A stretch of DNA of 64,000 nt from Macrostomum lignano (Eukaryota). The notes under the pieces are model-generated. The model did no database searches, was not told where the DNA came from, and was given only the letters and a program-made list of their open reading frames with translations. This document shows, one piece after another, positions 4,500-51,974 of this stretch. The stretch covers positions 925 to 64,924 of the forward strand of contig NIVC01004007.1 in the NCBI GenBank assembly GCA_002269645.1. Reading direction: 5' to 3'. Each line of letters opens with the position of its first letter. Within the stretch, counting starts at the first letter, position 1. Made by a program: the position numbers and the translations under genes.

Positions 4500-7400
4500 A
4501 TGCAATCTCAGCGCCTGAGGCTGGCACTCCTTCTAGGACGGTTTTTCGTTTCTTATGTTCTAAACGTTCTTAATTCCCTCAGGCCGAAAGATTGGGTTTG
4601 AGTCGGATTTGCCTTTGTAAATTTGAATAACGAAAGCCGCGTTTATAGTCAACCGGGTCCGCGCGGTTTCACACATGTCAGCTAAGGCGCTCATGAACTG
4701 TTGTTGGGTTTCCCCGCCCTCTCCCTGCAGCCTGCTAGGGCCTCCGCTACTCCAGCCAACCAGCCCGGGGGTTCCCGAGATTCCCACGCCTGCGGGCGGG
4801 GTGGGTGGCTGCGTTGAGAACAGGCAAAGAGGGGGCGGCGGCCTTGGTAGTTGACGGCGCTCATGGCCCCGACGCTGTCTCTCTGGGCAATGCCTAACCA
4901 TGGTTCTGCTTCCCCCTCTCTCGCCCATTCTCTCTCTCTCTCTATCCCGTTTTGCATCGGCTGTTGTGTTGAAGAGAGAACAAGGCAGAAGGCCAGCTAA
5001 CAAGCAGCTCAATATGGAAAGGCATTGGGTGAAGCTTCCACAGACACACGCAGGCGCACACACAAATTAGACTAATGCGGAGTTTGCTGTTGTTTGCGTA
5101 CTTAGTGCCCAACAGGGCGCGATACGCGCGGGGAGGGGAGAGAGAGAAAAAAAAATGAGAGGAAGGAGAAGACCGAAGTTGGTGCTGGGCAAATGCGATG
5201 AGCGGCGCGATTTCCGAGCGAATTCATGCTGAGAGCGCGCAACGAGTGGTGAGAACTATAGTTGCCGGTTGCCATAGCCCCTTGTCAACCGCGTCAACCG
5301 CTGCGCAGCAGGCTGCGAGCTATTAATTTGATTGCGCGATGGCAGCGCAGGGAATTATATAATACGCCCAGAGTACGCGGGCTAGTTGCAATTACGACGG
5401 CTTCGGGTTACAGCGGCTCATTTGTGCTCATTTTTTGCCTTTCTAATTGCTGGTGTTGCACGACACAGCTCTGCCAGAGAAAGTTATTGCCGCGCTCATT
5501 CGACCCTTTTGGAAATGAATTAATAAATAGAATGTTGGAGTCTAGTTCTCTTCTCTTCGAGTACCCGTATGGAGCTCCATTTTAATTTAATAGAAGCTAG
5601 GAGTGCTGTGCCCCCAGCAAAATGCTTTCTAAAAATACTCATACGGGTAAAGAAAACTTGGATAGGAAGCTGCTACACCTGCTTCAGCTAATACGAGTGA
5701 CAATTGAGAGTGAACAACATTGGCTAGACACAAATCCAAAGTGCACTTGTGTGCAAAAATGCAATTCAACATAATTGATGCCTTCGCCCCCTGCACACTG
5801 CATTGTGAGCTGGGTGATTCTAGGGGCAGAGTGAGCTTGAGAGATTGTCGGAGTCAGCGGAATGGACAAGAACTTAGCCTTCCTGCCATTATTATTACTA
5901 TTGTTATTACTATTATGGGTGGTTCCATTCAAGGGCTGTCCTGCTTTTGAAGATACTTAGATTCAATAGCCGCACATGTTATGAAGTCACATTTGGACTG
6001 TAAATCAAAATTCTATAGCATTAATTTGGTGTCAAACACAAGACGCCTTCATAGATAAACGTGATTACATTTGCATACACACGAATACACATGAAACTCA
6101 AAATTGAATTGTTTGCCTTTTTGCGTGGGGAATTCGCACATGTATAGTAAGAGCATTTGCACGCGCAAGATTACAAGATTAGCTTTGGCGTGGACCTTGG
6201 ACCTTAGTCAGAAAGCACACAAAGATCTGTTAATGGTACTGTTATTTAATTAAACTTGACAATAGTTAATGTGAGTAGTAATCATACTGATATTTCACTT
6301 AATATTATCGAGTGTATCATATTTTGCTTGTTTACCTTCTCTGTTTGTATTTTTCCGACCAATGACCAAACGTATGCCAGTTTCAAATGATTTACTGGAA
6401 AAAAGGAAAAAACCATATATTCTAATGAATGTTAACGAGAATTTGGGCCTCCCAGTGTAATACCCAAACCTCAAAACCGTGGACAACTTAAGTAAGAGCA
6501 CGCTGCACTCGATTTTCTTAGAAATGAGATGGTAAGGAACGTTAGAGAACACATACAGCGCTGAATGGGGTCCTGCCATAGACTATTTATCGTTGTCCAG
6601 AGCTGGCAGTCCTGTGACGACACTTCGATGATTTAATGTAACTCAACTTTTCTCCGATTTCACAGCTTAATCCAACTCTAGCCATAAGTCTCCACTCTCT
6701 CCTTAACAGCATTAGCCAGGGCCTTGTGACGAAAATTACATCGCCTTGCATTGCATTGAGAAGAGGACAGAGGTCAAAGCAGCTCAGTAATCTATGGCAC
6801 AATACACAGGTGTGAATGAGGTGTCTGATAGTAGACTAGAGTTATGGTTTAGGATATAGGATTAATTTAGTTTTGGAATATGGAAGGAATCCAAGGATAC
6901 GTAAGTCAGTCGTCGTAGGCCCTCTTGATAATACAACAGACCAAGCCGCACAGCCACAATGGTCATAACACCAGCATTTACTGGGCGAGCGCGGTACTAT
7001 AACTGTATTAGTGCATTGACTAAACGGCTGCAATAGAAGTTGGGAATTTAATGATGTAGCAGAGAATTGCAGCTGCAAAGTGGCCCGGAGGGATGCATTT
7101 AATGTAGAGACTGTGTGAGACTGACAATTTCACAATTTTTATTCAACCCGTTTAGGCTGTAGAGGTTGGTAGAGTTAGCACACAGAGTCGGCAGCCAAAT
7201 TTATGGTAATATTGCAAACTACACTCGACACCGTAACATCTATCGAATATATTTTATTGTTAGTCAATTATTTCTGTAAAAGAAATAGAAATGGCTGACC
7301 ACGAAAAAAGGCTAATGGACAACGGAAATTGCGATTTGTAAAACTAAAAACACAATAGGCAGTAAGTAGGATCATAGTAGTATGAAAGGCACACAATAAA

Positions 7401-7505: not shown

Positions 7506-8048
7506 CTAGCAGAAGCCGCGATTAATAACTCTGGCGCCGAGGCAGGACGCGATGCAAGAGTTCAGGTAGGTGTTGCGCGCGCTGCTACCGGAAGCGTAGG
7601 CGCACACGGGATCGTAGTTGCTGGGGCAGTTGCAGTTGCCGCCGGCATTGCGATTGTTATAGTTATTGTAGTTGTACCTGTACTGGTTGTAGTTGCGGTA
7701 GTTGCTCCGGTAGTTGCGGTAGTAGTTTCGGTAGTTGCGGTAGTTGTTCCGGTAGTTGTACGGGTTCCGGTTGTTATAGATATTGTAGTTATAGCGACTG
7801 CGGCTCCAATAGTTTGGATAGCTGCCGCTTCTGGTGCCGCCGCTGGTTGTGCCGCAAAATCCGTAGGTAAACGAGTTGTAGCCGTTGCACTGGGCGTAAC
7901 AAGAATTTGCGTAGGTTTGGCCGTTGGCGCACACGGGCTGGTAGCCGGCGCTGGCGCACTGGCTGCAGGACACCTGGCCATTGGCGAGATGGCTGGCAGC
8001 GGCGGCTAGCAGGACCACAGCCAGAGAGAGTGCGGAGCTGGAGCGCAT
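7506..8048 (-). CDS. Secreted 180-aa protein: signal peptide, Kazal domain, N/Y/R-rich linker, Kazal domain
   Basis: Hydrophobic leader MRSSSALSLAVVLLAAAASHLANG; CxxC...PVCANGQTYANSCYAQC...GFC and CNCPSNYDPVC...TYLNSCIASC...GFC*; single exon. Confidence 0.9.
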   Translation of the reverse strand: MRSSSALSLAVVLLAAAASHLANGQVSCSQCASAGYQPVCANGQTYANSCYAQCNGYNSFTYGFCGTTSGGTRSGSYPNYWSRSRYNYNIYNNRNPYNYRNNYRNYRNYYRNYRSNYRNYNQYRYNYNNYNNRNAGGNCNCPSNYDPVCAYASGSSARNTYLNSCIASCLGARVINRGFC

Positions 8049-9039
8049 CTTCAAATCAGCAATTAACTACCGGGCAGACTACCTGCGAAATTACCTGTCC
8101 TGTGGCGATAACCTTATGGGCTGATTAACTGAGCTGATTAAATACCTCTGCATGGGTGGGGTGGGTGGCGCCGGTCCTGCCTGCGCGCAACGTGCCAATA
8201 ATTGATTGGCTGGCTGATCTTGAAGTTAGTCGGTTGGTTTACATCATTGTACAGTGCCATTGTTACTCTCACTACCCCCTCACTCTTATCTAATCTCATT
8301 CTCTGCCCCCCCCTCTCTGACTAAACGAGAGCTTAGCCTGTGTTATGCGTAGTACGAGTATCAAAGATAAACGTTAATTGCCACTTTGCAATCGATGAAA
8401 ACTTGTTTAAATCGGTTTTTACCAAATATAACAAAGATCACACCAAAGATAACAATATAGGACAGCGTGCACAAACAGCCTGACTGGATGATTAATTATT
8501 GCTTGCTTAACTTTAAAAGTACACCAGGTAAGATTGAGCTACTCTCTAGCCAAACTAGCTCATTCTCCAGTGTAGCACACCTTCTCAGATTGGCTTTTTT
8601 TAATAGGTAATAAAGTTAGAAGTTATTATTGAATTGAAAATAGGCTTTATTAGGCATAATATTTGCGGCAAGTTGTTTATGCCCAAAGCGTTTAATTATA
8701 ATCAAGAGATAATGAAGAATTTTGTCCTACAGGTCTGCGATGACAAGTGAATGTCGAATACTCCATGGCAGTTAACTATAATATTATTGATTTAATTTAA
8801 AGCTCCTTGTGCGATCAAATACATGTCAGAAATTGCCGGTTAGAGCTCTGATGCATGTACACTGGCACTGAGTAGGATCATTTGTAATTTCCGGTTATGA
8901 GTCATTGTCTGGAAAATTGGTTATTATTTTGACAACTATTCATTACCTGTATAATTAATTGGTAAATATTCAGACAATGGGTTATTGTTAGGACAGCTAT
9001 TGTCAGGATAAAATTGGTCAGCAGAATTAAGGGCGGCAT

Positions 9040-9575
9040 ATTGGTCATCTATAGTCAGGGGTTTCATTGGTCATTTATGTCAGGGGTGTCATTGGTCATC
9101 TATGTCAGGGGTGTCATTGGTCATCTATGTCAGGGGTGTCATTGGTCATCTATGTCAGGGGTGTCATTGGTCATCTATAGTCAGGGGTTTCATTGGTCAG
9201 CTATAGTCAGGGGTGTCATTGGTCATCTATAGTCAGGGGTGTCATTGGTTATCTATAGTCAGTGTTGGCATTGGTCAGCTATAGTCAGGAGTGTCATTGG
9301 TCATTTATAGTCAGGGGTGTCATTGTTCATCTATAGTCAGTGTTGGCATTGGTCATCTATAGTCAGGGGTGTCATTGGTCATCTATAGTCAAGGGTTTCA
9401 TTGGTCATTTATAGTCAGGGGTGTCATTAGTCATCTATGTCAGGGGTGTCATTGGTCATCTATGTCAGGGGTGTCATTGGCCATCTATAGTCAGGGGTGT
9501 CATTGGTCATCTATGTCAGGGGTTTCATTGGTCGGTCATTTATAGTCAGGGGTGTCATTGGTCAGCTATAGTCAG
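9040..9575. repeat. 25-26 bp minisatellite (CATTGGTCATCTAT[A]GTCAGGGGTGT), about 20 copies
   Basis: Direct tandem repeats. Confidence 0.95.
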
Positions 9576-12607: not shown

Positions 12608-15600
12608 ATGAAGATCAACCAGAATCTGATGGACGCGCTCAAAATTAGCGACGAGGAGCTGGAAGGTGAGAGTTTTGGCTGATTTATTCAAGGTGCTCGT
12701 AATGTTGTGAGAAATGAAATTCGAATTTCAGAGCTCAAAGAAGCGTTTGCAATTTTTGACCAAGACAAGTCGGGCTTCATTGAGCCGCAAGAGCTGCGCC
12801 ACATCCTGCAAGTGCTGGGCCAGAATCCCACCAAGGCCGAGATTGACAGCATCATAGCCGAAGCAGATGTCATTGGTGAGAGCCTGTTTTTTGAGTTCGT
12901 GACTGTCTGAGGTTAGCTAGTTCGTCGAGGGGGGGGGCGCAAATTCCAGCTGACCCCCGAGCATGCACGCACACGGGATATGTACACAGGCACACGCTCA
13001 CAGAGGGTGTACAGCAGCGGCCCCGACTTTCCTTGTGCTTTTGGGGTTGGCTTTCATAGGCCATGAATCCCACGACAAACCCCAGGCTAATTTTCGTGCA
13101 CGAATCCCAAATTAATGTGGGTTCAGCCGTGTTATCGTTGAGCTGCTCTACTCCTGGTCACCCTAAACCCCACACTAAACCCCCACAAAAACGCAGTTAT
13201 TGACGGCAAGATCGACTTTAATGAGTTCGCGCGAATTATGAAGAGCAACTACAAATTCAAGTCGGCCAGCGAGATGGACAATGAGCTCATGTCGGCGTTT
13301 CAGGTTGGTGCTACTACTACTTGAGTGTCGTTAAGACCGTCAAATATGTTAGGAACGTAAAATACAAGGACCCTTAACTTACCGCTGTCTTAAAAATAGC
13401 AAATCTTTACTGTCTCAACTAGGTATTTGATCGCGACAGCAACGGCTACATCAGCCGGCAGGAGCTGGAGTTTGTGCTCACCTCAATCGGGGAGCGACTC
13501 ACTAGCGAGGAGGTGGACGAGATGTTTCGCTTTGCTGATACAAACGAGGATGGAAGGATCAGTTATAAAGGTGATTATGTCTACCGTAGATGCTAGTACC
13601 AACAATCCCACAATGTCTAGAAGCCAGTCCCAACAGCCCACAATGTCTAGAAGCCAGTCCCAACAAGCCCACAATGTCTAGATGCCAGTCTCAGCAATCA
13701 CACAATGTATAGATTCCGGTCCCAACAGCCCACAATGTCTAGATGCCAGTCCCAACAGCCCACAATGTCTAGAAGCCAGTCCCAACAAGCCCACAATGTC
13801 TAGATGCCAGTCCCAACAATCCCACAATGTATAGATGCCAGTCCCAACAATCCCACAATGTATAGATTCCAGTCCCACAAGCCCACAATGTCTAGATGCC
13901 AGTCCCAACAGCCCACAATGTCTAGAAGCCAGTCCCAACAGCCCACAATGTCTAGAAGCCAGTCCCAACAGCCCACAATGTCTAGAAGCCAGTCTCAGCA
14001 ATCACACAATGTATAGATTCCAGTCCCACAAGCCCACAATGTCTAGATGCCAGTCCCAACAGCCCACAATGTCTAGAAGCCAGTCCCAACATCCCACAAT
14101 GTCTAGATGCCAGTCCCAACAGCCCACAATGTCTAGAAGCCAGTCCCAACAGCCCACAATATCTAGAAGCCAGTACCAACAGCCCACAATGTATAGATGC
14201 CAGTCCCAACAGCCCACAATGTCTAGATGCCAGTCCCAAAGACTCCACAATGTCTAGATGCCAGTTCCAACAATCCCACAATGTATAGATTCCAGTCCCA
14301 ACAAGCCCACAATGTCTAGATGCCAGTCTCAGCAATCACACAATGTATAGATTCCAGTCCTAACAGCCTCTCAATGTCTAGATGCCAGTCCCAAGGACTC
14401 CACAATGTCTAGATGCCAGTTCCAACAATCCCACAATGTATAGATTCCAGTCCCAACAAGCCCACAATGTCTAGATGCCAGTCTCAGCAATCACACAATG
14501 TATAGATTCCAGTCCTAACAGCCCCTCAATGTCTAGATGCCAGTCCCAAGGACTCCACAATTTCTAGATGCCAGTCCCAACAAGCCCACAATGTCTAGAT
14601 GCCAGTCTCAGCAATCACACAATGTATAGATTCCAGTCCCAACAAGCCCACAATGTCTAGATGCCAGTCTCAGCAATCACACAATGTATAGATTCCAGTC
14701 CTAACAGCCCCTCAATGTCTAGATGCCAGTCCCAAGGACTCCACAATTTCTAGATGCCAGTCCCAACAAGCCCACAATGTCTAGATGCCAGTCTCAGCAA
14801 TCACACAATGTATAGATTCCAGTCCCAACAGCCCCTCAATGTCTAGATGCCAGTGCCAAGGACTCCACAATGGCTAGATGCCAGTCCCAACAATCCCACA
14901 ATGTATAGATTCCAGTCCCAACAAGCCCACAATGTCTAGATGCCAGTCTCAGCAATCACACAATGTATAGATTCCAGTCCTAACAGCCCCTCAATGTCTA
15001 GATGCCAGTCCCAAGGACTCCACAATTTCTAGATGCCAGTCCCAACAAGCCCACAATGTCTAGATGCCAGTCTCAGCAATCACACAATGTATAGATTCCA
15101 GTCCCAACAAGCCCACAATGTCTAGATGCCAGTCTCAGCAATCACACAATGTATAGATTCCAGTCCTAACAGCCCCTCAATGTCTAGATGCCAGTCCCAA
15201 GGACTCCACAATTTCTAGATGCCAGTCCCAACAAGCCCACAATGTCTAGATGCCAGTCTCAGCAATCACACAATGTATAGATTCCAGTCCTAACAGCCCC
15301 TCAATGTCTAGATGCCAGTCCCAAGGACTCCACAATTTCTAGATGCCAGTCCCAACAAGCCCACAATGTCTAGATGCCAGTCTCAGCAATCACACAATGT
15401 ATAGATTCCAGTCCCAACAGCCCCTCAATGTCTAGATGCCAGTGCCAAGGACTCCACAATGGCTAGATGCCAGTCCCAACAGCCCTACAATGTCTAGATG
15501 CCAGTACCAACAGCCCTACAATGTCTAGATATTCCAGTACCAACAATCCCACAATGTCTAGCTAGAATGCCTAGCATGAATAGATGCTGTTCAACCACCA

Positions 15601-15653: not shown

Positions 15654-16554
15654 AATTCTTCCGTCTTAGAGCACCGACATGCAAATCTGAATTGACGATA
15701 ATAGCTCCGCCGTGCTTCTAAACATAATTTTAACTCAATATTTGCATGCCTATTTACTATTATCGTCTAGCTTACATAATCTTTCTTTGTAAAAGCTATC
15801 CTGACCATTTGGCATCGACAATACGCTAAATTAGTGCTCTTAAATCTGCTTATATATAAAAAAATTCTAGGTAAAAGTACCATCACAGACTGATAGTCGA
15901 TTGACAGCTAAATACTGTAATATTTCAGAATTTTTGTTTGCTCTACTGAAAATAAATTAAATAAACAAGGGAAATTAACCTTCATGATGAAGTTTCATAA
16001 CATAATATTCTATTATCTGCACTTTGTGAATCACAGTTGAGTAATAAACATATGATTAGTGTTGCAATCTATTTTAATTATTATATATTAAATTATTAAA
16101 TAAATTCGCTCTTGTCTCGGGCAAAAGAAAAAGATTGGGTTGGATACAAAAAAACCTATGTGCACTACTGCCCTGTAAATTCTAGTAGTATTAATAGAAA
16201 TGAATTCAACTAGTAAAGCTAGGCGACAATGCCCTAATGGTTTATTAATAATATAACAAATTAAACAGCGCACAACAGCAAAATCAGCTTGCAGGCTAGC
16301 ACAAATTATTCAAATAAAAATGAGAGAATTGTAAATTACTATTTACCAACAGCAGAAAGCATTTTCCGCCCTGAAGACATGGACCCTATAAACTTGTCCT
16401 GTGCTTATACGCCACTTACAAACTCAGTACTAATATACTCGTAGAATACACAAGGAATGGTTGCCATTGCCACTGTATACTGACTCCTGTGCCAGTATAT
16501 ACTGTTATAACAGAACTGCTTTGATATTTTTAGCTGTCTTTAATCTTATCATGA

Positions 16555-17322
16555 TCTGTCTGTCTAGGCGCTAGACCTCAGTCTGGTCTAATCTCATCTT
16601 GATATGTCTAGGCGCCAGATCTCAGTCTGGTCTAATCTCATTATGATCTATCCGTCTAGGCGCTAGATCTCAGTCTGATCTAATCTCATCATGACCTATC
16701 TGTCTAGGCGCTAGATCTCAGTCTGATCTTATCTCATCATGATCTGTCTAGGCGCCAGATCTCAGTCTGGTCTAATCTCATTATGATCTATCCGTCTAGG
16801 CGCTAGATCTCAGTCTGATCTTATCTCATCATGATCTGTCTAGGCGCCAGATCTCAGTCTGGTCTAATCTCATTGTGATCTATCCGTCTAGGCGCTAGAT
16901 CTCAGTCTGATCTAATCTCATCATGATCTGTCTAGGCGCTAGATCTCAGTCTGGTCTAATCTCATCATGATCTATCTATCTAGGCGCTAGATCTCAGTCT
17001 GATCTTATCTCATCATGATCTGTCTAGGCGCCAGATCTCAGTCTGGTCTAATCTCATTATGATCTATCCGTCTAGGCGCTAGATCTCAGTCTGATCTAAT
17101 CTCATCATGATCTGTCTAGGCGCTAGATCTCAGTCTGGTCTAATCTCATCATGATCTATCTATCTAGGCGCTAGATCTCAGTCTGATCTTATCTCATCAT
17201 GACCAATCTGTCTAGGCGCTAGATCTCAGTCTGATCTTATCTCATCATGATCTGTCTAGGCGCTAGATCTCAGTCTGGTCTAATCTCATCATGATCTATC
17301 TGTCTAGGCGCTAGATCTCAGT
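16555..17322. repeat. 41-45 bp minisatellite (TCTAGGCGCTAGATCTCAGTCTGATCTAATCTCATCATGATCTG)
   Basis: About 18 tandem copies, rich in short palindromes. Confidence 0.95.
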
Positions 17323-18789: not shown

Positions 18790-21700
18790 CTGCATTGCGA
18801 AACAATATTGGGTTCCCGTTGATTGAAAACTACTGCAAAATGCGCATATTTCTACTTATAGTAGCTGGTCAGAGAATTGAAAATGTGCGTCAATACTACT
18901 GACTAAATGAGAACATTAGTAATATACTCAGATATCAACATCGCTAATTGTTCATGACACAGGTGACACTTTCTGTGCGCTTATTCTGAAAACAGGTGAC
19001 ACTTTCTGTGCGCTTATTCTGAAAACAGGTGACACTTTCTGTGCGCTTATTCTGAAAACAGGTGACACTTTCTGTGCGCTTGTCCTGAAAACAGGTGACA
19101 CTTTCTGTGCGCTTATTCTGAAAACAGGTGACACTTTCTGTGCGCTTGTCCTGAAAACAGGTGACACTTTCTGTGCGCTTATTCTGAAAACAGGTGACAC
19201 TTTCTGTGCGCTTGTCCTGAAAACAGGTGACACTTTCTGCACGCTTGTCCCGGGAACAGATGACACTTTCTGTGCGCTTGTCCCGGGAACAGATGACACT
19301 TTCTGCACGCTTGTCCCGGGAACAGATGACACTTTCTGCACGCTTGTCCCGGGAACAGATGACACTTTCTGCACGCTTGTCCCGGAAACAGATGACACTT
19401 TCTGCACGCTTCTCCCGGGAACAGATGACACTTTCTGCACGCTTGTCCCGGGAACAGATGACACTTTCTGCACGCTTGTCCCGGGAACAGATGACACTTC
19501 TGCACGCTTCTCCCGGGAACAGATGACACTTTCTGCACGCTTGTCCCGGGAACAGATGACACTTTCTCTGTATGCCCACCAATTCGCGTAAAATATCGCG
19601 TATTTAATCTACCCAGCGATCCTATTAGGCAGAAAAGCGCATTCCAAGAGCTAACCTGAAAAGCGTGCCTAACGGCCGCCTTGCGCAGGTCGAGCAGGGC
19701 CACGCCGCCTTTGGCTGTGCCGGCTAGCAACAGTTGGCGCTGCGGCGCGTAGGCCAGCGAAGTGCAACCGGCCTGCAGAGCCGGATCGAAGAAGCGCTGC
19801 ACAACGGACTTCTCAACTGGGAGCAGAGTGTCCAGAGGGCCGCGTTCGCCTCCGATTCGGCGCCCGTGCCGCCAGTGGCATACAGAGTTGAACAGCCGGC
19901 GAATAGCAGGTCGGAACAGCCGCGCGAGTGCCCGCGCCACACCCTGTAGGGCTTGTCCGACTCGGCGCCGCCGCCACCGCCGGCGCCCACAATGCTGCGC
20001 CAGTGCCACAGGGACACGTAGCCTTCGCTGTCGCCAACGGCGAATCGATTGCCGTAAACGTTGAAACGCAGGGCGGTGACTCGGCCGCCTACGCTGATAC
20101 TGCCCGGCTTGGTTAGCGGGGCCCGGTGCGACCATTCGTAGCAGTCGATGGCGCCGGAGGCCGAGCCGAATAGGTAGTTGTGCCTGTCAGGGTGGGCCGC
20201 CACCTGGAATGCGGGATAACTAGTGAGTATTAGTGCCAGTAGGCTGCTCAATGGGATAATCAGTAGGCTGCTCAATGGGATAACCAGTAGGCTGCTCAAT
20301 GGGATAACCAGTAGGCTGCTCAATGGGATAACCAGTAGGCTGCTCAATGGGATAACCAGTAGGCTGCTCAATGGGATAACCAGTAGGCTGCTCAATGGGA
20401 TAACCAGTAGGCTGCTCAATGGGATAACCAGTAGGCTGCTCAATGGGATAACCAGTAGGCTGCTCAATGGGATAACCAGTAGGCTGCTCAATGGGATAAC
20501 CAGTAGGCTACTCAATGGGATAACCAGTAGGGCTGATCAATGGGATAATCACTAGGGCTACTCAATTGGATAATCAGTAGGCTGCTCAATGGGATGATCA
20601 GTAAGACTGCTCAATGGGATAATCAGTAAGACTGCTCAATGGTATAATCAGTAAGACTGCTCAATGGGATAATCAGTAAGACTGCTCAATGGGATAATCA
20701 GTAAGACTGCTCAATGGGATAATCAGTAAGACTGCTCAATGGGATAATCAGTAGGCTGCTCAATGGGATAATCAGTAGGCTGCTCAATGGGATAATCAAT
20801 AAGACTACTCAATGGGATAATCAGTAAGACTGCTCAATGGGATAATCAGTAGGCTGCTCAATGGGATAATCAGTAGGCTGCTCAATGGGATAATCAATAA
20901 GACTACTCAATGGGATAATCAGTAAGACTGCTCAATGGGATAATCAATAAGACTGCTCAATGGGATAACCAGTAGGCTGCTCAATGGGATAACCAGTAGG
21001 CTACTCAATGGGATAACCAGTAGGGCTGATCAATGGGATAATCACTAGGGCTACTCAATTGGATAATCAGTAGGCTGCTCAATGGGATGATCAGTAAGAC
21101 TGCTCAATGGGATAATCAGTAAGACTGCTCAATGGTATAATCAGTAAGACTGCTCAATGGGATAATCAGTAAGACTGCTCAATGGGATAATCAGTAAGAC
21201 TGCTCAATGGGATAATCAGTAAGACTGCTCAATGGGATAATCAGTAAGACTGCTCAATGGGATAATCAGTAAGACTGCTCAATGGGATAATCAGTAGGCT
21301 GCTCAATGGGATAATCAGTAGGCTGCTCAATGGGATAATCAATAAGACTACTCAATGGGATAATCAGTAAGACTGCTCAATGGGATAATCAGTAGGCTGC
21401 TCAATGGGATAATCAGTAGGCTGCTCAATGGGATAATCAATAAGACTGCTCAATGGGATAATCAGTAAGACTGCTCAATGGGATAATCAGTAAGACTGCT
21501 CAATGGGATAATCAGTAGGCTAACCAACACACAGGTTAAGAGCCTTAGCGAAAAGGCAGAGCAACATTGTGAAAAAGGTTACTCTACCTGTCGCGGCTTC
21601 GGCAAAGAGCGACGCGTAATGAGCCTGGCCGGCCAGCCCTTGATGACGCTGGAAGAAAGGGTTGGCACCGGGGTGACGCCAGGCACGGCGAAGCTGGTCA

Positions 21701-24700
21701 ACAGGCGAGGCAGCTGGTCGGAATCCAGCTGGCCGACAGCGTCGCCAACAAACCCGCCGGCGCCAGCGACTGTGGCCGAGGCCAGGCCGCCGTAGTCTTC
21801 GTCGTCTAGGCCGGCCGGAGAAAACGGGTGCAGCATGAGGTCGCAGATGTCCAGCTCAACTAGCTCTTTGCTGGTGGCCAGGGTTAGGCAGTTCTGATTG
21901 GCCCGGCTAAGGCAGAAACTGCTAATCGCTTCGCCTTTGGTGTCGTGCACGAGAGCTACTGGGAGGTCGGCAGCGGCGGCCGGAGCGGCTTCGGTTAATT
22001 CGGCGCTAGACAAGGTCGGAGGCGGCGGTCGGGGAGGCGCCGACTTTTGCTGCTGCTGCTGCGACGACGTGGTCGACATCGGCGGCGGCGGGAAGGCGAA
22101 TTTGGCGAACACGTCGCGGGCGGCCTCCTTGCGCACAAGCTGCGCCCATAGCCGATTGCAGAGTCGTTCAGACAGCGACTGGCCAGGGAACGGCGTTCGC
22201 TCGGCGTCTAGCAGCAGCTTGTAGCGCTCCATCAGCAGGCGGGCAGGCTGGAATGTTGAATCCTCGCCTACGAACGAGGAATTGCCGCCGCCTAGGAATC
22301 CTGATGAAATTTAGGAAGTTAGCGCCTCTTTTACCACTACAGAATGCTTTGCGCATCTAGGCAAATTTAACCATTGTTAGCTTTTCTACTCGAGCTATTC
22401 TGGTAGCCAATTCTTGACGAATTTGAGGCACATGAGCATGGTTTTAGATATTCGAGATGTTTTAGAGATAATTGAGACGGTTTTGAGATAATTGAGACGG
22501 TTTTGAGATAATTGAGACGGTTTTAAAATAATTGAGGGTTTAAGATACTTAAGTCGGTTTGGAGACACTTCAGATGGTTTTGAAACACTTCAGATGGTTT
22601 TGAGACACTTCAGATGGTTTTGAGACACCTCAGCTGGTTTTGAGACACCTCAGATGGTTTTGAGACACCAGATGGTTTTGAGACACCTCAGCTGGTTTTG
22701 AGACACCTCAGATGGTTTTGAGACACCAGATGGTTTTGAGATACTTAATTCGGTTTTGAGATACTTCAGATGGCTTTGAGATACGTGAAATGGTTTTGAG
22801 ATACTTCAGATGGTTTTGAGATACTTCAGATGGCTTTGAGATACGTGAGATGGTTTTGAGATACTTCAGATGGTTTTGAGATAGTTCAGATGGCTTTGAG
22901 ATATGTGAGATGGTTTTGAGACACTTCAGTCGGTTTTGAGATACTTCAGATGGCTTTGAGATACGTGAAATGGTTTTGAGATACTTCAGATGGTTTTGAG
23001 ATACTTCAGATGGTTTTGAGATACTTCAGATGGCTTTGAGATATGTGAGATGGTTTTGAGACACTTCAGTCGGTTTTGAGATACTTCAGATGGCTTTGAG
23101 ATACGTGAAATGGTTTTGAGATACTTCAGATGGTTTTGAGATACTTCAGATGGTTTTGAGATACTTCAGATGGCTTTGAGATATGTGAGATGGTTTTGAG
23201 ACACTTCAGTCGGTTTTGAGATACTTCAGATGGCTTTGAGATACGTGAAATGGTTTTGAGATACTTCAGATGGCTTTGAGATATGTGAGATGGTTTTGAG
23301 ACACTTCAGTCGGTTTTGAGATACTTCAGATGGCTTTGAGATACGTGAAATGGTTTTGAGATACTTCAGATGGCTTTGAGATACGTGAAATGGTTTTGAG
23401 ATACTTCAGATGGCTTTGAGATACGTGAAATGGTTTTGAGATACTTCAGATGGCTTTGAGATACGTGAAATGGTTTTGAGATACTTCAGATGGCTTTGAG
23501 ATACGTGAAATGGTTTTGAGATACTTCAGATGGCTTTGAGATACGTGAAATGGTTTTGAGATACTTCAGATGGCTTTGAGATACGTGAAATGGTTTTGAG
23601 ATACTTCAGATGGCTTTGAGATACGTGAGATGGTTTTGAGACACAAGATTTTTACCACAACTGTAGGTAGTGATAAGAGCTGTCACTGCTGGGGAATGCA
23701 GTCAAAGTGCGGTCACAGTCTTCTTTAGAAGCTTAATAAGACTAATACGAGTGAATTAAGAGACAAACCGTCGGGCGGCTGGCCAATCCGTCGCAGACGA
23801 TCGCGGAACGCCCGCTGCCATTGGTGAACCCGCTTGACGGCGTTGTACAGAGCCGGCGATTCCACAGGCAGGTCGGACAGTTCCAGGCCGACCTGGGGCA
23901 GGAAGCGGCCAACTTGGTCCAGTGCCACCCGGACACAGGCGCAGCGCATCAGCAGCCAGGCGTATTCGCGACGTTCCTGAGCGGCTTGGCGCCGACGCGA
24001 AACAGCCGGCGTCTGGCGCATCTGCCGGCTCGATCGATAGGATCTGTCAGCGTCCAGGTCGGCCATTGAGCCGCCGAAGCCGGGAATCTCGTCTGGCGCG
24101 GCCTCGGCATGCTCGTCGTCTTGAGTGTCGTCGTCAGCATCGTCATTTTCGGAGACGTTGGCGGAGTCGAAATCGGCCGCTTGGCCGGCTGGCTGGCGCG
24201 GATCTGGCGGCAGTTTGGCCAGCAGGCAGCCCAGGATGGAGGCGCGCGGCTGCACAAACCGCTCGGTGAAGCCGCGACTGCCGCCGCCGCCGGCGCTACT
24301 CGACGTTGCAGGCGACGGCTGCTGATGCTGCTGCGGTTGAGGCGGCGGCGGCAGCGGCGGGGCCCCGCCACCTTGCACAGTGCTCAAGTAGAGTTTTACT
24401 CGCTGCTTTGACATCTCGTCAGTGACGCGGGGGATTCCCCCGCCGACAACTGCTGCTGCTGCTGCTGTGCCTGGCGCCGAGGACTAGCGCCGCCGCCGGC
24501 GATGACAACGCCGCTGGACAAAGCGTGGCCGCCAGAGCCGGCTGGCGACCCGCTGATTCGCATCGGCGCCGGCCGCTGCGGGGTCTTCAATCCGCCGCCG
24601 AACACAGCGCCCCATACGCTGGTGGTAAGCGACCTGGCAACCAGCCGGTGAAGAATCTTGGCATTAGCCGTGGTCAGGCCGTAGGTTAAGGTGGCCAGGT

Positions 24701-27700
24701 AGACGCTGAGGAAGGCCTCGGTTAAGATGATGTTCAGCCGTGGGACGTCGTCATCTTTGTGCCGTTCTAGCAGGCTGCGGAGATGCGCGATGCCCGGCCA
24801 CTTGCTGGGCTGGGTGTTGGGCGCTTCCAGGTCTTCTTGAGGCTGCTGACTGGCGCCTGCTAGTGTGAGTGCGCGGTATTCATTTGAAAGGGACTCTATA
24901 ATGGATTTTATCGACAGTGAAAGCGCCGCTCTGATACATCGCTTCCATTTTAGGGCTACAGTAGGGTCCGTGAAAAAGGGTCCAAATTTCCGCGGAAAGG
25001 CCGCGGAATTCTGTGCAAAATGTGTGAAATTTGCGCTTATTATATTGAATCTTGCTCTTTGCCCAGGAATTCATACTCCTTCCGTGACTAAATCTCTTTT
25101 TTCTTCTAGTAGAACCAATATGAAAGAGATTTAAAGCCTAATTTAAATCTTTGAATAATTTCTTTATGATGTCAGGCCATCACGTCACCGAAAATCAAAA
25201 GGTTCCATCGAATATTAAAGCGCTTTTCTGATAAGAAACAAGGAGATAGAGAGAGATGGAGAGAGGAGAGAGGCGGCAGGGAGGAGGAGAGAGGAGAGAG
25301 GCGGCAGGGAGGAGAGAGGAGAGAGGCGGCAGGGAGGAGAGAGGAGAGAGGCGGCAGGGACGAGAGAGGAGAGAGGCGGCAGGAAGGAGAGAGGCGGCAG
25401 GGAGGAGGAGACAGGAGAGAGGCGGCAGGGAGGAGAGAGGAGAGAGGCGGCAGGGAGGAGAGAGGAGAGAGGCGGCAGGGAGGAGAGAGGAGAGAGGCGG
25501 CAGGGAGGAGAGAGGAGAGAGGCGGCAGGGAGGAGAGAGGAGAGAGGCGGCAGGGAGGAGAGAGGAGAGAGGCGGCAGGGAGGAGAGAGGAGAGAGGCGG
25601 CAGGGAGGAGAGAGGAGAGAGGCGGCAGGGAGGAGAGAGGAGAGAGGCGGCAGGGAGGAGAGAGGAGAGAGGCGGCAGGGAGGAGAGAGGAGAGAGGCGG
25701 CAGGGAGGAGAGAGGAGAGGCGGCAGGGAGGAGGAGAGAGGAGAGAGGCGGCAGGGAGGAGAGAGGAGAGAGGCGGCAGGGAGGAGAGAGGCGGCAGGGA
25801 GGAGAGAGGAGAGAGGCGGCAGGGAGGAGAGAGGAGAGAGGCGGCAGGGAGGAGAGAGGAGAGAGGCGGCAGGGAGGAGAGAGGAGAGAGGCGGCAGGGA
25901 GGAGGAGGCGGCAGGGAGAAGAGAGGAGAGGCGGCAGGGAGGAGAGAGGCGGCAGGGAGGAGAGAGGCGGCAGGGAGGAGAGAGGCGGCAGGGAGGAGAG
26001 AGGCGGCAGGGAGGAGAGAGGCGGCAGGGAGGAGAGAGGCGGCAGGGAGGAGAGAGGAGAGAGGCGGCAGGGAGGAGAGAGGAGAGAGGCGGCAGGGAGG
26101 AGAGAGGCGGCAGGGAGGAGAGAGGCGGCAGGGAGGAGAGAGGAGAGAGGCGGCAGGGAGGAGAGAGGCGGCAGGGAGGAGAGAGGCGGCAGGGAGGAGA
26201 GAGGCGGCAGGGAGGAGAGAGGCGGCAGGGAGGAGAGAGGAGAGAGGCGGCAGGGAGGAGAGAGGCGGCAGGGAGGAGAGAGGCGGCAGGGAGGAGAGAG
26301 GCGGCAGGGAGGAGAGAGGAGAGAGGCGGCAGGGAGGAGAGAGGCGGCAGGGAGGAGAGAGGCGGCAGGGAGGAGAGAGGCGGCAGGGAGGAGAGAGGCG
26401 GCAGGGAGGAGAGAGGAGAGAGGCGGCAGGGAGGAGAGAGGCGGCAGGGAGGAGAGAGGCGGCAGGGAGGAGAGAGGCGGCAGGGAGGAGAGAGGCGGCA
26501 GGGAGGAGAGAGGCGGCAGGGAGGAGAGAGGAGAGAGGCGGCAGGGAGGAGAGAGGAGAGGCGGCAGGGAGGAGGAGAGAGGAGAGAGGCGGCAGGGAGG
26601 AGAGAGGAGAGAGGCGGCAGGGAGGAGAGAGGCGGCAGGGAGGAGAGAGGAGAGAGGCGGCAGGGAGGAGAGAGGAGAGAGGCGGCAGGGAGGAGAGAGG
26701 AGAGAGGCGGCAGGGAGGAGAGAGGAGAGAGGCGGCAGGGAGGAGGAGGCGGCAGGGAGAAGAGAGGAGAGGCGGCAGGGAGGAGAGAGGCGGCAGGGAG
26801 GAGAGAGGCGGCAGGGAGGAGAGAGGCGGCAGGGAGGAGAGAGGCGGCAGGGAGGAGAGAGGCGGCAGGGAGGAGAGAGGCGGCAGGGAGGAGAGAGGAG
26901 AGAGGCGGCAGGGAGGAGAGAGGAGAGAGGCGGCAGGGAGGAGAGAGGCGGCAGGGAGGAGAGAGGCGGCAGGGAGGAGAGAGGAGAGAGGCGGCAGGGA
27001 GGAGAGAGGCGGCAGGGAGGAGAGAGGCGGCAGGGAGGAGAGAGGCGGCAGGGAGGAGAGAGGCGGCAGGGAGGAGAGAGGCGGCAGGGAGGAGAGAGGA
27101 GAGAGGCGGCAGGGAGGAGAGAGGCGGCAGGGAGGAGAGAGGCGGCAGGGAGGAGAGAGGCGGCAGGGAGGAGAGAGGAGAGAGGCGGCAGGGAGGAGAG
27201 AGGCGGCAGGGAGGAGAGAGGCGGCAGGGAGGAGAGAGGCGGCAGGGAGGAGAGAGGCGGCAGGGAGGAGAGAGGAGAGAGGCGGCAGGGAGGAGAGAGG
27301 CGGCAGGGAGGAGAGAGGCGGCAGGGAGGAGAGAGGCGGCAGGGAGGAGAGAGGCGGCAGGGAGGAGAGAGGCGGCAGGGAGGAGAGAGGAGAGAGGCGG
27401 CAGGGAGGAGAGAGGAGAGAGGCGGCAGGGAGGAGAGAGGCGGCAGGGAGGAGAGAGGAGAGAGGCGGCAGGGAGGAGAGAGGCGGCAGGGAGGAGGAGA
27501 CAGGAGAGAGGCGGCAGGGAGGAGAGAGGAGAGAGGCGGCAGGGAGGAGAGAGGAGAGAGGCGGCAGGGAGGAGAGAGGAGAGAGGCGGCAGGGAGGAGA
27601 GAGGAGAGAGGCGGCAGGGAGGAGAGAGGCGGCAGGGAGGAGGAGACAGGAGAGAGGCGGCAGGGAGGAGAGAGGAGAGAGGCGGCAGGGAGGAGAGAGG

Positions 27701-36700: not shown

Positions 36701-38421
36701 TACTGATTATCCCATTGAGCAGCCCTACTGATTATCCCATTGAGTAGCCCTAGTGATTATCCCATTGAGCAGCCTTACTGATTATCCCATTGAGCAGCCT
36801 ACTTTTTAGAACAATGCATACTTACAGACTAGACGCCAATATACTCTTGTGCAGGTGAATAGAGTCCTCCATAGTCCAGCCGGTGCCGCCAGTTGACTCC
36901 CACTCGTAGATAGCCACTCGAATATCGAATAGCTTACCGGTGCCGCAGCCGTTCCCAATCTTAATACCCTCATCTTCCTCGCCAGGCAGACTGCTAGTGC
37001 TGCCTGTGCTGCTGCGGTAGGCCACGGCGATCCGGCCGCTATAGGCGCAGGAGACGCACAGCGGCTGGCCGGGAACTTCAATAGCGCTAGCCGAATCGCC
37101 TAGCATTCGCCATTCGCGCCAATCTGATCCGGTGGCTTCGCCACCTCTCTGTTGCCATGGCGACCAGAATCGGATACGATTATCAGTGCACACGGTGGCT
37201 AGTAGGTAGGGTGATAGGCAGGCCGGATAGATCGATGCGGAGCTGAGATGGCCGGCTGACACGGCCGCTTGAGTTATGCCAACTCCAGGCGGCAGGGCCA
37301 GTGCAGCCGAGGCCACCTTGGCTGAGCACACTGTCAGGCTGAGCTCGCTGAGCAGTGTGCGACGGCTTGAGTCCGCGTACGGCGACTCCGGCTCGCTGGG
37401 GCTGCCAGCATTAACTGACTGCTGCCGCTGCAGCTGCTGCTCGGCTGGGGTCCGCTTGCCTGAATTGAATTGATAGTTAATGGGTTAATGAGACAGGTAA
37501 AAAATTCTGGTGACACATGACAAGACGGCAGTCAGACTGACAGGTGACACACGGCAAGACAGCAGTCAGACTGACAGGTGACATACGGCAAGACAGCAGT
37601 CAGACTGACAGGTGACACACGACAAGACAGCAGTCAGACTGACAGGTGACACACGGCAAGACAGCAGTCAGACTGACAGGTGACACACGACAAGACAGCA
37701 GTCAGACTGACAGGTGACACATGACAAGACAGCAGTCAGACTGACAGGTGACAGAGGGCAGGACAGCAGTCAGACTGACAGGTGACACACGTGACACAGG
37801 ACGGCAACTCACCGAGGGTGATACGCCACACGTGAAGACGGGTAACGCCGTCAGGCTCCCCAACCAGCATTGCCAAATAGAAGTTGCCAGTCTGAGCATC
37901 TGTTGACGTGGCCGACGAGGCCGTCTCGGCAGCCGATCGATTGCCGGTGACCAGCGGCTCGGCGAAAGCGTGCAGAATGAGAGCGCCGCCGCCTGGGACG
38001 CGAGAGTGGGCCACTTCGGCTAGTTCAACAACGCAGCCAGGCTTAGAGGCACTCTGCAAGCTGACAATCTCGCTGCTGTTGCTGCCGGCCATGGACACGT
38101 GGCTGGCTATGCTGGTGTCCGTTGTGGAGGAGCTCATACCGCTTGCTGCGCCAACACCCTGCAGTGAATTGAAAATTAACTTTGCTAACTGGCTACTTCA
38201 AGTAGAAATTTACGAAATTTCGACTTATTGAAATTGAACATGCAAATAAAAATAAGTGCGCGTACACTTTTGCATAGACGACTAACATAAAAGATTAATT
38301 GAAGACCAAATAAGACGCGTAGATAAACAGACACAGACGCAGACTGGCACACGGGAAATAGACAGACAGACAGACCGATAGACAGACAGACAAGACAGAC
38401 AGACCGATAGACAGACAGACA

Positions 38422-50398: not shown

Positions 50399-50694
50399 AT
50401 TTTCGTTAACGTCTACTTATAGTAGAATTCAATAAAATAAAACTGGGTGCAGGCAGGATAAGGCAAAGGGAGAGATCGAAAATGGCGAAGCAAAACCCGC
50501 TGATAGCAGGCGCCGTGTCCGTGGCAGCAGCTCTCTGTCACAGAGCCTACGCAGCATGCATTCATTTCACAACTAACAGTTTTAGAACTATAGATAGATA
50601 GAAACAAACATTTATGGACTAAATCAAGTATTCTGAGTCATCCATCATCAGTCGGAGTAAAAAATTAAACGTTTAGCGCTTACGGTTGGCCCTA

Positions 50695-51520: not shown

Positions 51521-51974
51521 TGGATCATTCGAAGGATCATAAGAGACGTGAATCATAAAGACAATCTTAACAGCTTAATAAGGCAAATAACTTGACAGAC
51601 AAAGAAAGATGTGCATTAATAGCTGAATAAATGTACAAACGAGGAAACGTATTTTATTGATCAATTTATTTCATTACAGATCGGGTCGCACAGCATTAGT
51701 ATGCGCGCTAGACAAGCGAAAATGTAAAGCAAACAGCGGATACAATGCAAAAGAACGAACAAGAGAACCCACAGTGCATTTTTATTTTGCGATAAGTAAT
51801 CACGAAATAATGACGATGAAGCCAAGAGGATTATTAAACTGTCGGCGTCAACTAAAAACAAAGGATTCTGCGACCAGCTTTTGATCCCGACGTAGAAACT
51901 GTTCTATAAATAAGTCAGACGCGCTTTGTTAAACTTAGAATGTAAACAAGTAAATATTTGAAATAAATCAAGGC

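Follow-up and report, generated by a model that had tools for sequence, protein, structure and literature searches.

Small secreted inhibitors of the Kazal type, such as the leech tryptase inhibitor LDTI, rhodniin, infestin and the sea-anemone elastase inhibitor, share the six-cysteine framework C-x1-C-x7-C-...-C-x3-C-x10-C and carry Lys, Arg or His at the P1 position. They have, in addition, the reactive loop C-P-P1-x-Y-x-P-V-C and the motif T-Y-x-N-x-C, with its supporting Asn, in common, and in rhodniin a linker connects two Kazal heads. Kazal domains are held together by three disulfides (1-5, 2-4 and 3-6), have a central helix that packs on a small three-stranded sheet, and inhibit serine proteases by tight binding in the manner of a substrate. 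A different kind of secreted protein is represented by the mussel protein Mfp-3, which is small and basic, is rich in Gly as well as in Asn and Arg, contains approximately 20-30% Tyr but little or no Lys and hardly any acidic residues, and has no folded domains. Dense Tyr and Arg “stickers” separated by polar spacers are also typical of the FUS-family prion-like/RGG regions and of the N/Y-rich prion domains of yeast, and such tracts are expected to undergo phase separation, possibly with amyloid-like hardening. Inhibitor domains are furthermore found in sticky extracellular material, namely in the Kazal proteins of limpet pedal mucus, in the 10-Kazal protein of the Exaiptasia pedal disc and, as TIL domains, in Mlig-ap2; domains of the Kazal type and of other protease inhibitors are met repeatedly in limpet adhesive mucus and sea-anemone pedal discs, and a protective role, that of guarding the material, has been proposed for them (PMC7333891, PMC6626399, PMC8621496).

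The window, i.e., the whole stretch of 64,000 nucleotides of DNA from the marine flatworm Macrostomum lignano analyzed here, contains a gene, Mlig029904, the product of which was compared with all these systems (Table 1). From the N- to the C-terminus, the protein is composed of a signal peptide, the first Kazal domain, a spacer of Gly, Ser and Thr, a linker of 58 residues dominated by Asn, Tyr and Arg (N/Y/R), and the second Kazal domain, which ends at the final Cys.

Table 1. Features of the Mlig029904 locus (positions refer to the window; residues are numbered from the initial Met).
Feature	Position	Strand	Residues or letters	Basis
Candidate TATA-like box, 89-96 nt upstream of the ATG	8137..8144	minus	TATTTAAT	By reading; putative
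Mlig029904 CDS, complete, single exon	7506..8048	minus	180 codons + TAG; ATG at 8048, stop at 7508-7506	ORF and window translation
Signal peptide	7977..8048	minus	aa 1-24 (MRSSSALSLAVVLLAAAASHLANG, followed by Q)	Read by eye; cleavage site predicted
Kazal-like domain 1	7854..7967	minus	aa 28-65 (CSQCASAGYQPVCANGQTYANSCYAQCNGYNSFTYGFC)	Pfam near miss, PDB matches, multi-Kazal relatives
Gly/Ser/Thr spacer	7821..7853	minus	aa 66-76 (GTTSGGTRSGS)	Composition; site of G71A
N/Y/R low-complexity linker	7647..7820	minus	aa 77-134 (YPNYW...NNRN)	Composition, no Pfam match
21-nt tandem repeat in the linker	7689..7758	minus	7-residue unit, roughly NYRNYYR	3.3 copies, 89% identity
Kazal-like domain 2	7509..7634	minus	aa 139-180 (CNCPSNYDPVCAYASGSSARNTYLNSCIASCLGARVINRGFC)	All six Cys align with LDTI
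Candidate poly(A) signal, approximately 250 nt downstream of the stop	7253..7258	minus	First canonical AATAAA	By reading; putative

The protein is already present in GenBank as the hypothetical protein BOX15_Mlig029904g3, which is 96-99% identical to the ORF of the window and was the sole match in a word-indexed homology search with the full-length sequence. Since the annotation of the respective M. lignano assembly was made from RNA-seq-derived transcripts (PMC5730564), a Mlig029904 transcript exists. Three genomic copies of the gene were found (that of the window, L001 and L002), all of them intact. They differ by four synonymous and two non-synonymous changes, G71A in the spacer and N102Y in the linker, while the protein sequence of the Kazal domains and the letters of the TATA-like box are the same in all three. 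Neither tblastn nor blastn revealed paralogues inside the 64-kb window, so the gene is not part of a tandem cluster. The GenBank product, being 173 aa long, is exactly one 7-residue unit short, but it was rejected as a real splice form, because the genomic ORF is 180 aa long at each of the two annotated loci. In L001 and L002 two repeat units of the linker are perfect duplicates of each other, and the 21 nt missing from the shorter product correspond to one of them, which fits a collapse during mapping or assembly.

The signal peptide has the typical n-h-c structure, with a basic n-region, a hydrophobic core of 13 residues and an A-x-G cleavage motif, and the protein is thus predicted to be secreted, as the initial annotation of the locus had proposed. 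The mature part comprises 156 aa (approximately 17.9 kDa, calculated pI 9.35) and includes 26 Tyr (17%), 31 Asn, 15 Arg and one Asp, while Lys, Glu, His and Met are absent. The entire precursor likewise has neither Lys nor Glu, and D146 is its only acidic residue, which bears out the earlier statement that the mature protein is Lys-free and has a single acidic residue. No dibasic sites and no repeated peptides between cleavage sites were present, and a prohormone or other peptide precursor was therefore rejected.

The 12 Cys residues form two six-Cys blocks with the spacing characteristic of Kazal domains, C-x2-C-x8-C-x9-C-x3-C-x10-C in domain 1 and C-x1-C-x7-C-x15-C-x3-C-x10-C in domain 2. 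Domain 2 keeps both the loop C-P-P1-x-Y-x-P-V-C (as CPSNYDPVC) and T-Y-L-N-S-C; it bears an insertion of five residues between Cys3 and Cys4, and its Cys6 is the last residue of the protein. Domain 1 keeps Y-x-P-V-C and T-Y-A-N-S-C, but its Cys2-Cys3 loop (CASAGYQPVC) exceeds the canonical one by one residue, and it thus conforms to the canonical reactive loop with Y-x-N-x-C only if an insertion is allowed. In the Pfam search, the whole protein scored 20.5 bits with Kazal_2 (gathering threshold 22.8) and 19.5 bits with Kazal_1 (gathering threshold 21); domain 1 alone scored 20.6 bits with Kazal_2 (E = 4.7e-4) and 13.9 bits with the other Kazal model, and domain 2 alone 14.0 bits with Kazal_1. 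These values are near misses (E from 5e-4 to 5e-2) that stay under the thresholds of PF00050 and PF07648, which counts against an inhibitor. HMMER searches among 1.84 billion representative sequences gave 437 matches at E ≤ 1e-3, 69 of which reached E ≤ 1e-10; in nearly every one of the best 150 of the 437, the best-matching stretch lay inside one end domain, and each of ten matches scanned with Pfam contained Kazal domains (up to 128 bits). Among solved structures, LDTI is the best relative. It was matched by domain 1 with E = 3.6e-5, along with rhodniin and SPI-1, and by domain 2 with E = 1.2e-3 and all six Cys aligned end to end, SPI-1, infestin and the sea-anemone elastase inhibitor being weak matches of domain 2 (E 0.04-0.4). 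A single-sequence AlphaFold2 model of the whole protein had a mean pLDDT of 36.8 and a pTM of 0.19, values too low for the model to be of use. Judging by the HMMER relatives and the PDB matches, both ends of the protein carry genuine Kazal domains of the non-classical kind (MEROPS I1), and in this respect the sequence comparisons agree with the initial annotation.

These comparisons also bear on the question of whether Mlig029904 is a gene at all. The window abounds in tandem satellites, from which long spurious ORFs result, and the Pfam scores are under threshold, as might be expected of a chance ORF over a satellite-like repeat or of a decaying pseudogene. Such a non-functional ORF is hardly credible, however, as a single frame holds the signal peptide, the two six-Cys domains and the stop right behind Cys6, significant homology extends to many Kazal proteins, the changes among the three diverged copies are mostly synonymous, and the gene model is transcript-derived. 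The signal peptide, the pair of Kazal domains, a divergence among the copies that leaves the frame untouched and the transcript origin of the gene model were the grounds on which the chance ORF was rejected.

The loop CPSNYDPVC of domain 2 can be aligned residue for residue with CPKILKPVC of LDTI, so that Ser occupies the position of the LDTI Lys, which we take to be the P1 residue of that inhibitor. The Ser at P1 that had been suggested for both domains is consequently confirmed for domain 2, while for domain 1 it depends on the alignment, since the loop there is one residue over the usual length: P1 is Ser when counted from Cys2 and Ala when counted back from Y-x-P-V-C. Ser at P1 is ordinary among the relatives of the protein (24 of 415 Kazal cores). 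It usually means modest affinity, which counts against an inhibitor, and the extra residue of domain 1 or the insertion of domain 2 could impair inhibition. Nonetheless, as far as can be told from their sequences, the Kazal domains, and domain 2 in particular, look like working inhibitors and not like inert end caps. In comparison with the LDTI-type inhibitors, Mlig029904 thus shares with rhodniin the two linker-joined heads and differs in the P1 Ser (or Ala), in the additional loop residue of domain 1 and the insertion of domain 2, and in the possession of the N/Y/R tract; its inhibition is, moreover, a predicted one. Within M. lignano, a comparable protein is Mlig007587 (P0054, 149 aa, four gene copies), which, similarly to Mlig029904, has a signal peptide, small basic Arg-rich Kazal domains with a core of the PVCA(N/S)G(K/R/Q)T(Y/F)RN type, and several near-identical copies. 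It differs in having three consecutive Kazal domains with no low-complexity linker. The two proteins matched each other with E = 2.2e-12 along approximately 40 residues (63.7 bits for three matching stretches), so that Mlig007587 is not an orthologue of Mlig029904.

In its sequence, the linker is unique. Its 58 residues include 21 Asn, 18 Tyr and 11 Arg (36%, 31% and 19%; 50/58 in total), precisely as counted in the initial annotation, the remainder being 3 Ser, 2 Pro, 1 Trp, 1 Ile and 1 Gln; there is no Gly, Lys, Glu or His, and the net charge is +11. The motif NYR occurs five times, Tyr residues follow each other at intervals of 1-6, mostly 2-4, residues, and the two Kazal domains are 69-73 residues apart, counting the spacers. 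The share of N, Y and R is 86%, against 17% expected from the base composition of the window (P ~1e-30), and in none of the six frames of the 64 kb does any other stop-free stretch of 58 aa reach 60% N/Y/R. The linker had no match in Pfam, and a search with the linker only among 5.8 billion proteins (E ≤ 10) returned six word-sharing candidates, none of which scored, which means that its analogues are not findable by sequence. In the best 150 of the 437 relatives, no segment exceeded 52% N/Y/R, compared to 92% in Mlig029904. The arrangement Kazal-N/Y/R-Kazal, which the initial annotation had not recognized, was not encountered elsewhere in the databases searched. Like the FUS-family regions and the yeast prion domains, the linker combines dense Tyr and Arg with polar Asn spacers; in contrast to them, it is predicted to be extracellular and is flanked by disulfide domains, half of its residues are stickers, it is charged +11, and it contains hardly any Gly, Ser or Gln spacers.

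Considering the end domains and the linker together, we tentatively favor, with a confidence not far below an even chance, a reading in which Mlig029904 is a cationic, self-associating, double-headed protease inhibitor resident in the matrix of some secreted material. Two non-classical (LDTI/rhodniin-type) Kazal heads enclose a lineage-specific tract that would be intrinsically disordered, its Tyr and Arg serving as stickers and its Asn residues as spacers. The heads would be working canonical inhibitors of serine proteases, and their small P1 residue (Ser; Ser or Ala in domain 1) may direct them to elastase- or subtilisin-like targets, e.g., microbial or digestive ones, and not to trypsin-like proteases. 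The N/Y/R tract would provide self-association as well as sticking to anionic or aromatic partners in the secreted material via Tyr-Arg cation-pi contacts, pi-pi contacts and hydrogen bonds, while its charge should keep the protein soluble until it is screened by seawater salt or polyanions. The material may be mucus or a secretion of rhabdites, egg cement, eggshell or seminal fluid. Working heads combined with a sticky tract would yield a matrix-resident double-headed inhibitor that guards the secreted material and maybe adds to its cohesion. It is known that polypeptides rich in Arg and Tyr condense when present at micromolar concentration (PMC13339138). The intact frames, the mostly synonymous changes and the absence of glycosylation sequons were counted as signs of selection, in favor of this reading; the inhibitory activity and its specificity, the self-association and the tissue or material are what we infer. 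The inhibitor proteins of the limpet, Exaiptasia and Mlig-ap2 adhesives provide a parallel, although they are large and multidomain (vWD, EGF, TSP-1 and other domains), whereas Mlig029904 is tiny and its sole non-inhibitor part is of low complexity.

The 21-nt repeat varies between the copies, and the linker could thus be a neutral expansion of the microsatellite type. The protein would then be an ordinary soluble double-headed Kazal inhibitor of the gut, pharyngeal glands or seminal fluid, with a neutral spacer produced by 21-nt slippage. Such an explanation is in line with the homology of both heads to canonical inhibitors, with the perfectly duplicated repeat unit of L001 and L002, with the location of both amino-acid differences among the copies in the spacer and linker, with the lack of any relatives of the linker and with the existence in M. 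lignano of the plain three-Kazal basic family Mlig007587. We find it unlikely, as only approximately 70 of the 174 linker nucleotides are recognizably repetitive, whereas the diverged rest retains the same three-residue composition, which is preserved by N102Y as well. Besides, Lys and Glu are missing from the folded domains just as they are from the linker, suggesting that charge is tuned over the entire protein, all three copies have kept the reading frame open, and N-glycosylation sequons (N-x-S/T) are avoided: none is found among the 31 Asn, against approximately 3-4.4 expected (P = 0.006-0.03).

The composition of the linker had earlier been compared with that of Mfp-3, and the protein had been regarded as a glue, cement, eggshell or mucus component, an idea that is physically plausible. 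The likeness holds insofar as the protein is small, basic, Tyr/Arg-rich, Lys-free and nearly free of acidic residues; it is a likeness in composition to Mfp-3-type plaque proteins. Both proteins would be expected to show cation-pi and pi-pi cohesion, but the Mlig029904 linker, unlike Mfp-3, is Gly-free and Kazal-flanked, and the two share no sequence homology. Mlig029904 could accordingly be viewed as mainly a structural or adhesive precursor (of egg cement, another permanent glue or a rhabdite/mucus matrix) that employs DOPA and/or Mfp-3-like coacervation, the Kazal domains being end caps or cross-link nodes. A signal peptide and a lineage-restricted, repeat-driven sequence are typical of or compatible with adhesive proteins, M. 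lignano possesses shell and cement glands, the cement secretions of which fix the eggs (PMC4490696), and byssal proteins commonly pair folded Cys-rich modules with Tyr-rich tracts (PMC9168380). On the other hand, neither full-length nor linker-only searches revealed homology to any adhesive, foot or cement protein; DOPA has so far been reported only from permanent adhesives and not from temporary ones, e.g., those of the flatworm duo-gland system (PMC8621496); the known glue proteins of M. lignano are giant and multidomain (PMC6410801); and the tyrosinases of flatworms are of the transmembrane gamma subclass and not of the secreted alpha subclass that mussels use (PMC11667028). The protein also lacks Lys, His and free Cys, which could serve as quinone acceptors or tanning partners, and its Kazal loops seem functional rather than degenerate.

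Searches of published supplements yielded no expression data for Mlig029904. Mlig029904 is missing from the gland transcripts compiled from in-situ screens, including the complete table of in-situ-characterized M. lignano transcripts in Brand 2020. Its identifier is absent from the supplements of Grudniewska 2018, Brand 2020 and Mouton 2018, the word “Kazal” and peptide or nucleotide fragments of Mlig029904 are absent from those of Arbore 2015 and Weber 2018, and neither “Mlig029904” nor its peptide strings occurred in searchable full texts. With these arguments on both sides, a mainly adhesive precursor seems unlikely. Its narrower version, a one-component cement or matrix protein in which coacervation through Tyr and Arg is triggered by salt (e.g., a permanent egg glue, Kazal-capped and convergent with Mfp-3), is quite unlikely in our estimation. 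If it were true, the protein would be the first adhesive of the Tyr/Arg type, possibly of the DOPA type, in Platyhelminthes, and one in which nature has fused a folded inhibitor to a sticky domain of low complexity.

An eggshell function can be considered separately. In trematodes, the tanning of Tyr-rich vitelline proteins by tyrosinase is well established, and the known flatworm eggshell precursors are marked by Lys, His and Gly-rich tracts. By parallel with these Tyr-rich proteins of parasitic flatworms, Mlig029904 might be a precursor stored in the eggshell granules of oocytes and cross-linked by tyrosinase. The protein is small, presumably secreted and Tyr-rich, with a repeat-based low-complexity tract, eggshell granules do accumulate in M. 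lignano oocytes (PMC4490696), and Platyhelminths have a tyrosinase clade of their own (PMC11667028). However, the mature protein has neither Lys nor His, its linker has no Gly, and full-length searches found no eggshell precursor homologues; we consider this function very doubtful.

Returning to the matrix-resident inhibitor, its significance depends on the N/Y/R tract. If the linker is neutral, Mlig029904 is one further lineage-specific Kazal inhibitor. If the tract drives self-association or surface binding, the protein would represent a minimal natural design, in which two disulfide-knotted inhibitors and an extremely sticker-dense tract are accommodated within 18 kDa. It would then be of use for modelling how phase separation proceeds outside the cell in seawater, as a template for bio-adhesives or coatings that withstand proteases, and as a test of whether Tyr/Arg chemistry has evolved convergently in flatworms and mussels. 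The tools available for M. lignano (RNAi, transgenesis and in-situ hybridization) would allow this to be tested directly.

The Kazal gene lies on the minus strand as one exon of 180 codons, complete from ATG (8048) to TAG (7508-7506), and its protein layout is listed in the table. A search of 5.8 billion clustered proteins returned a single close homologue, 'hypothetical protein BOX15_Mlig029904g3 [Macrostomum lignano]', named 'Kazal-like domain-containing protein' in UniRef and encoded on two contigs of the assembly GCA_002269645.1 (L001, NIVC01000897.1, and L002, NIVC01001828.1), neither of which is the window. This match identifies the window as genomic DNA of M. lignano, a free-living marine flatworm. 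The window is 99.07% identical to L001 over 8.5 kb and approximately 93% identical to L002, which is rearranged. Three genomic copies of the gene were found, which fits the hidden polyploidy of M. lignano described in PMC10468722; within the window no paralogue or second copy was detected. The 180-codon frame is intact in all three copies, and their coding sequences differ at six positions, four synonymous and two non-synonymous. The latter change the spacer (G71A) and the linker (N102Y); at the protein level the Kazal domains do not vary. As the GenBank annotation of the assembly was built on RNA-seq-derived transcript assemblies (PMC5730564), the gene model implies a transcript. That the ORF is spurious is essentially excluded.

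The GenBank gene BOX15_Mlig029904g3 spans 543 nt and has a product of 173 aa, but the genomic ORFs of L001 and L002 (10001-10543) encode 180 aa. A splice form was rejected, as in both contigs one repeat unit is perfectly duplicated and the 21 nt absent from the product are one of its two copies. The shorter annotation is probably a result of transcript-assembly or mapping collapse, and the deposited protein is likely to be 7 residues too short.

The name 'Mlig029904' was present in no full text of the searched literature, nor in the searched supplements of Grudniewska 2018, Mouton 2018 and Brand 2020 (for the positional classes of the latter, among the rows searched). File 16 of Brand 2020 gives a complete list of the transcripts characterised in situ by Arbore 2015, Weber 2018, Ramm 2019 and other screens. 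The supplements of Arbore 2015 and Weber 2018 contained neither the word 'Kazal' nor fragments of the gene sequence. Considering these searches, the gene appears never to have been characterised previously.

With the whole protein as query, both Pfam models scored below their cutoffs (Kazal_2, 20.5 bits vs 22.8; Kazal_1, 19.5 vs 21), as did each domain scanned singly. When 1.84 billion representatives were scanned exhaustively with HMMER, 437 matched at E<=1e-3, 69 of them at E<=1e-10; for nearly all of the best 150 of these 437 the best stretch lay inside an end domain, and all ten relatives scanned gave Pfam Kazal matches, nine reaching the gathering score. Among PDB entries, domain 1 matched LDTI (E=3.6e-5), SPI-1 and rhodniin. 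For domain 2 the LDTI match (E=1.2e-3) ran over the full length and aligned all six Cys; those to the sea-anemone elastase inhibitor and to infestin were weaker (E 0.04-0.4). Both domains possess the Y-x-P-V-C segment and the T-Y-x-N-S-C motif, the Asn of which braces the canonical binding loop of the Kazal family. On the basis of the HMMER and PDB matches and of these retained motifs, both end domains are, at the sequence level, slightly deviating Kazal domains of the non-classical (invertebrate) type: the Cys2-Cys3 loop of domain 1 is one residue longer (CASAGYQPVC), and in domain 2 five residues are inserted between Cys3 and Cys4. A model built by AlphaFold from the single sequence was unusable (mean pLDDT 36.8). 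The initial annotation had predicted Ser at P1 of both domains; this holds for domain 2, where CPSNYDPVC aligns over CPKILKPVC of LDTI, the Lys opposite this Ser being the LDTI P1, but not firmly for domain 1, where the residue is Ser or Ala depending on insertion placement. Ser in the second position after Cys2 is not unusual: 24 of the 415 Kazal cores of the relatives have it.

The linker composition reported initially proved exact: its 58 residues include 21 Asn, 18 Tyr and 11 Arg, i.e., 50 in total, where 17% of codons would be expected from the base composition of the window (P ~1e-30); Gly is absent. In six frames of the window there is no second stop-free 58-residue stretch with at least 60% N/Y/R. 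Also as annotated, the protein has a single acidic residue (Asp146) and no Lys; Glu and free Cys are absent as well, and the mature protein lacks His and Met. None of the 31 Asn of the mature protein (window 7509-7976) lies in an N-x-S/T sequon, against approximately 4.4 expected when the whole sequence is shuffled (P=0.006) and 3.0 when it is shuffled segment by segment (P=0.03), which fits bare Asn side chains being wanted. A recognisable DNA repeat (7689-7758; 21-nt unit, 3.3 copies, 89% identity) is confined to the tract centre; the remainder is non-repetitive and still keeps the N/Y/R composition. A simple soluble inhibitor whose linker is neutral and arose by slippage would account for the repeat and for the differences between copies. 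It is an unlikely explanation, however, and leaves unexplained that Lys and Glu are missing from the whole protein, that the composition persists beyond the repeat and that sequons are avoided.

The architecture, unrecognised in the initial annotation, was not found elsewhere by homology search either. The richest 40-residue N/Y/R window among the best 150 relatives reached 52% (in an Arg-rich protein) vs 92% here, and the richest Tyr window 17.5% vs 35%; a search with the linker alone yielded six proteins sharing five-residue words, none at E<=10. Mlig007587 (149 aa, four gene copies), the sole other M. lignano family among these 150, is a plain basic three-Kazal protein which, unlike the Kazal gene product, has no linker. 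Its g1-g4 products (P0054 / P0156) are small, Arg-rich and secreted, and the gene copies, which lie outside the window, are near-identical; M. lignano may possess a small repertoire of basic Kazal proteins. Judged from its sequence, the protein under study is a Kazal-type inhibitor joined to an unprecedented Tyr/Arg/Asn tract.

The gene stands alone between satellite arrays, with no other called gene within approximately 7 kb in L001 and no sign of a gland-specific or secreted-protein cluster nearby. The flanking arrays (26-nt and 31-nt units) are also present in the homeologous L001 in different copy numbers. The window is dominated by very dense tandem satellites, whose periods range over 16-92 nt and whose copy numbers reach 64; homogeneity is 99% in the 56-nt array at 32432-34054. 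A 3.4-kb purine-only array (25258-28718; units GGAGAGAGG / CGGCAGG, period 18-25) is essentially T-free on the plus strand (core 26001-28000: GC 0.70, AT skew 1.0) and creates spurious ORFs of approximately 1,160-1,190 aa on both strands (25195-28799). One 25-nt satellite family occurs at 20237-21521 and 36066-36803, approximately 15 kb apart and in opposite orientation (CAGTAGGCTGCTCAATGGGATAAT vs reverse complement CCATTGAGCAGCCCTACTGATTATC). Exon-sized minus-strand ORFs at approximately 28786-50398 suggest a large DMXL/rabconnectin-3-like (RAVE complex) gene with satellite-filled introns, one of which probably hosts a Tc1/mariner-type element.

Features of the Kazal gene product (aa) and of the window (nt)
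Feature	Position	Strand	Remarks
Signal peptide (predicted)	aa 1-24	minus	basic start, hydrophobic core ALSLAVVLLAAAA, A-N-G / Q cleavage motif; read by eye
Kazal-like domain 1	aa 28-65	minus	
Gly/Ser/Thr spacer	aa 66-76	minus	
N/Y/R tract (linker)	aa 77-134	minus	
AGGN	between N/Y/R tract and Kazal-like domain 2	minus	
Kazal-like domain 2	aa 139-180	minus	stop codon immediately 3' of sixth Cys
Distinct satellites	9040-9575, 13587-15561, 16543-17322, 18959-19567, 22438-23641, 30641-31343, 32432-34054, 50687-51521, 53084-55471		
Rav1p_C C-terminal	28786-30465	minus	weak Pfam match
Rav1p_C	35076-35936	minus	Pfam 30.8 bits, above gathering score
Transposase ORF, Tc1/mariner-type	42526-43851	plus	441 aa, intact-looking; HTH + DDE_3 domains
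WD40	49481-50398	minus	Pfam E=1.4e-12

Taken together, the Kazal gene has a transcript-based model and a conserved reading frame, and it encodes a small, strongly basic protein comprising a signal peptide, two Kazal domains whose loops look canonical and a unique Tyr/Arg/Asn tract. We tentatively favour, as a possible function, a matrix-resident double-headed protease inhibitor. Its heads would inhibit serine proteases that prefer a small P1 residue, namely elastase- or subtilisin-like ones, as are typically found in microbes and in digestion. The tract would be disordered and sticky; in low-complexity domains that phase-separate, Tyr and Arg are the classic stickers. Micromolar concentrations suffice for Arg-rich and Tyr-rich polypeptides to condense (PMC13339138). 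With no negative charge, and with 18 Tyr and 11 Arg among its 58 residues, the tract would repel itself at low salt and associate once seawater salt or polyanions (e.g., sulfated glycans) screen the charge; the linker would anchor or condense the protein in secreted material, which the heads would protect. In the literature, protease-inhibitor domains recur in limpet adhesive mucus and the sea-anemone pedal disc, and the M. lignano glue protein Mlig-ap2 carries TIL inhibitor domains.

The initially proposed structural or adhesive role seems rather unlikely. The compositional likeness to Mfp-3 is real, and egg cement, a permanent glue, would be a plausible home; however, full-length and linker-only searches revealed no homology to adhesive proteins, the linker is Gly-free, and the protein offers no Lys, His or free Cys with which quinones could react. 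Moreover, DOPA is so far known from permanent adhesives only, flatworm tyrosinases form a different, transmembrane subclass, and the characterised M. lignano glue proteins are giants. An eggshell precursor, a reading that a small, Tyr-rich and presumably secreted protein would suit, is improbable, since its make-up does not fit that of known flatworm eggshell proteins, which are rich in Lys, His and Gly. M. lignano is an organism in which this Kazal/Tyr-Arg-Asn protein can be tested quickly.
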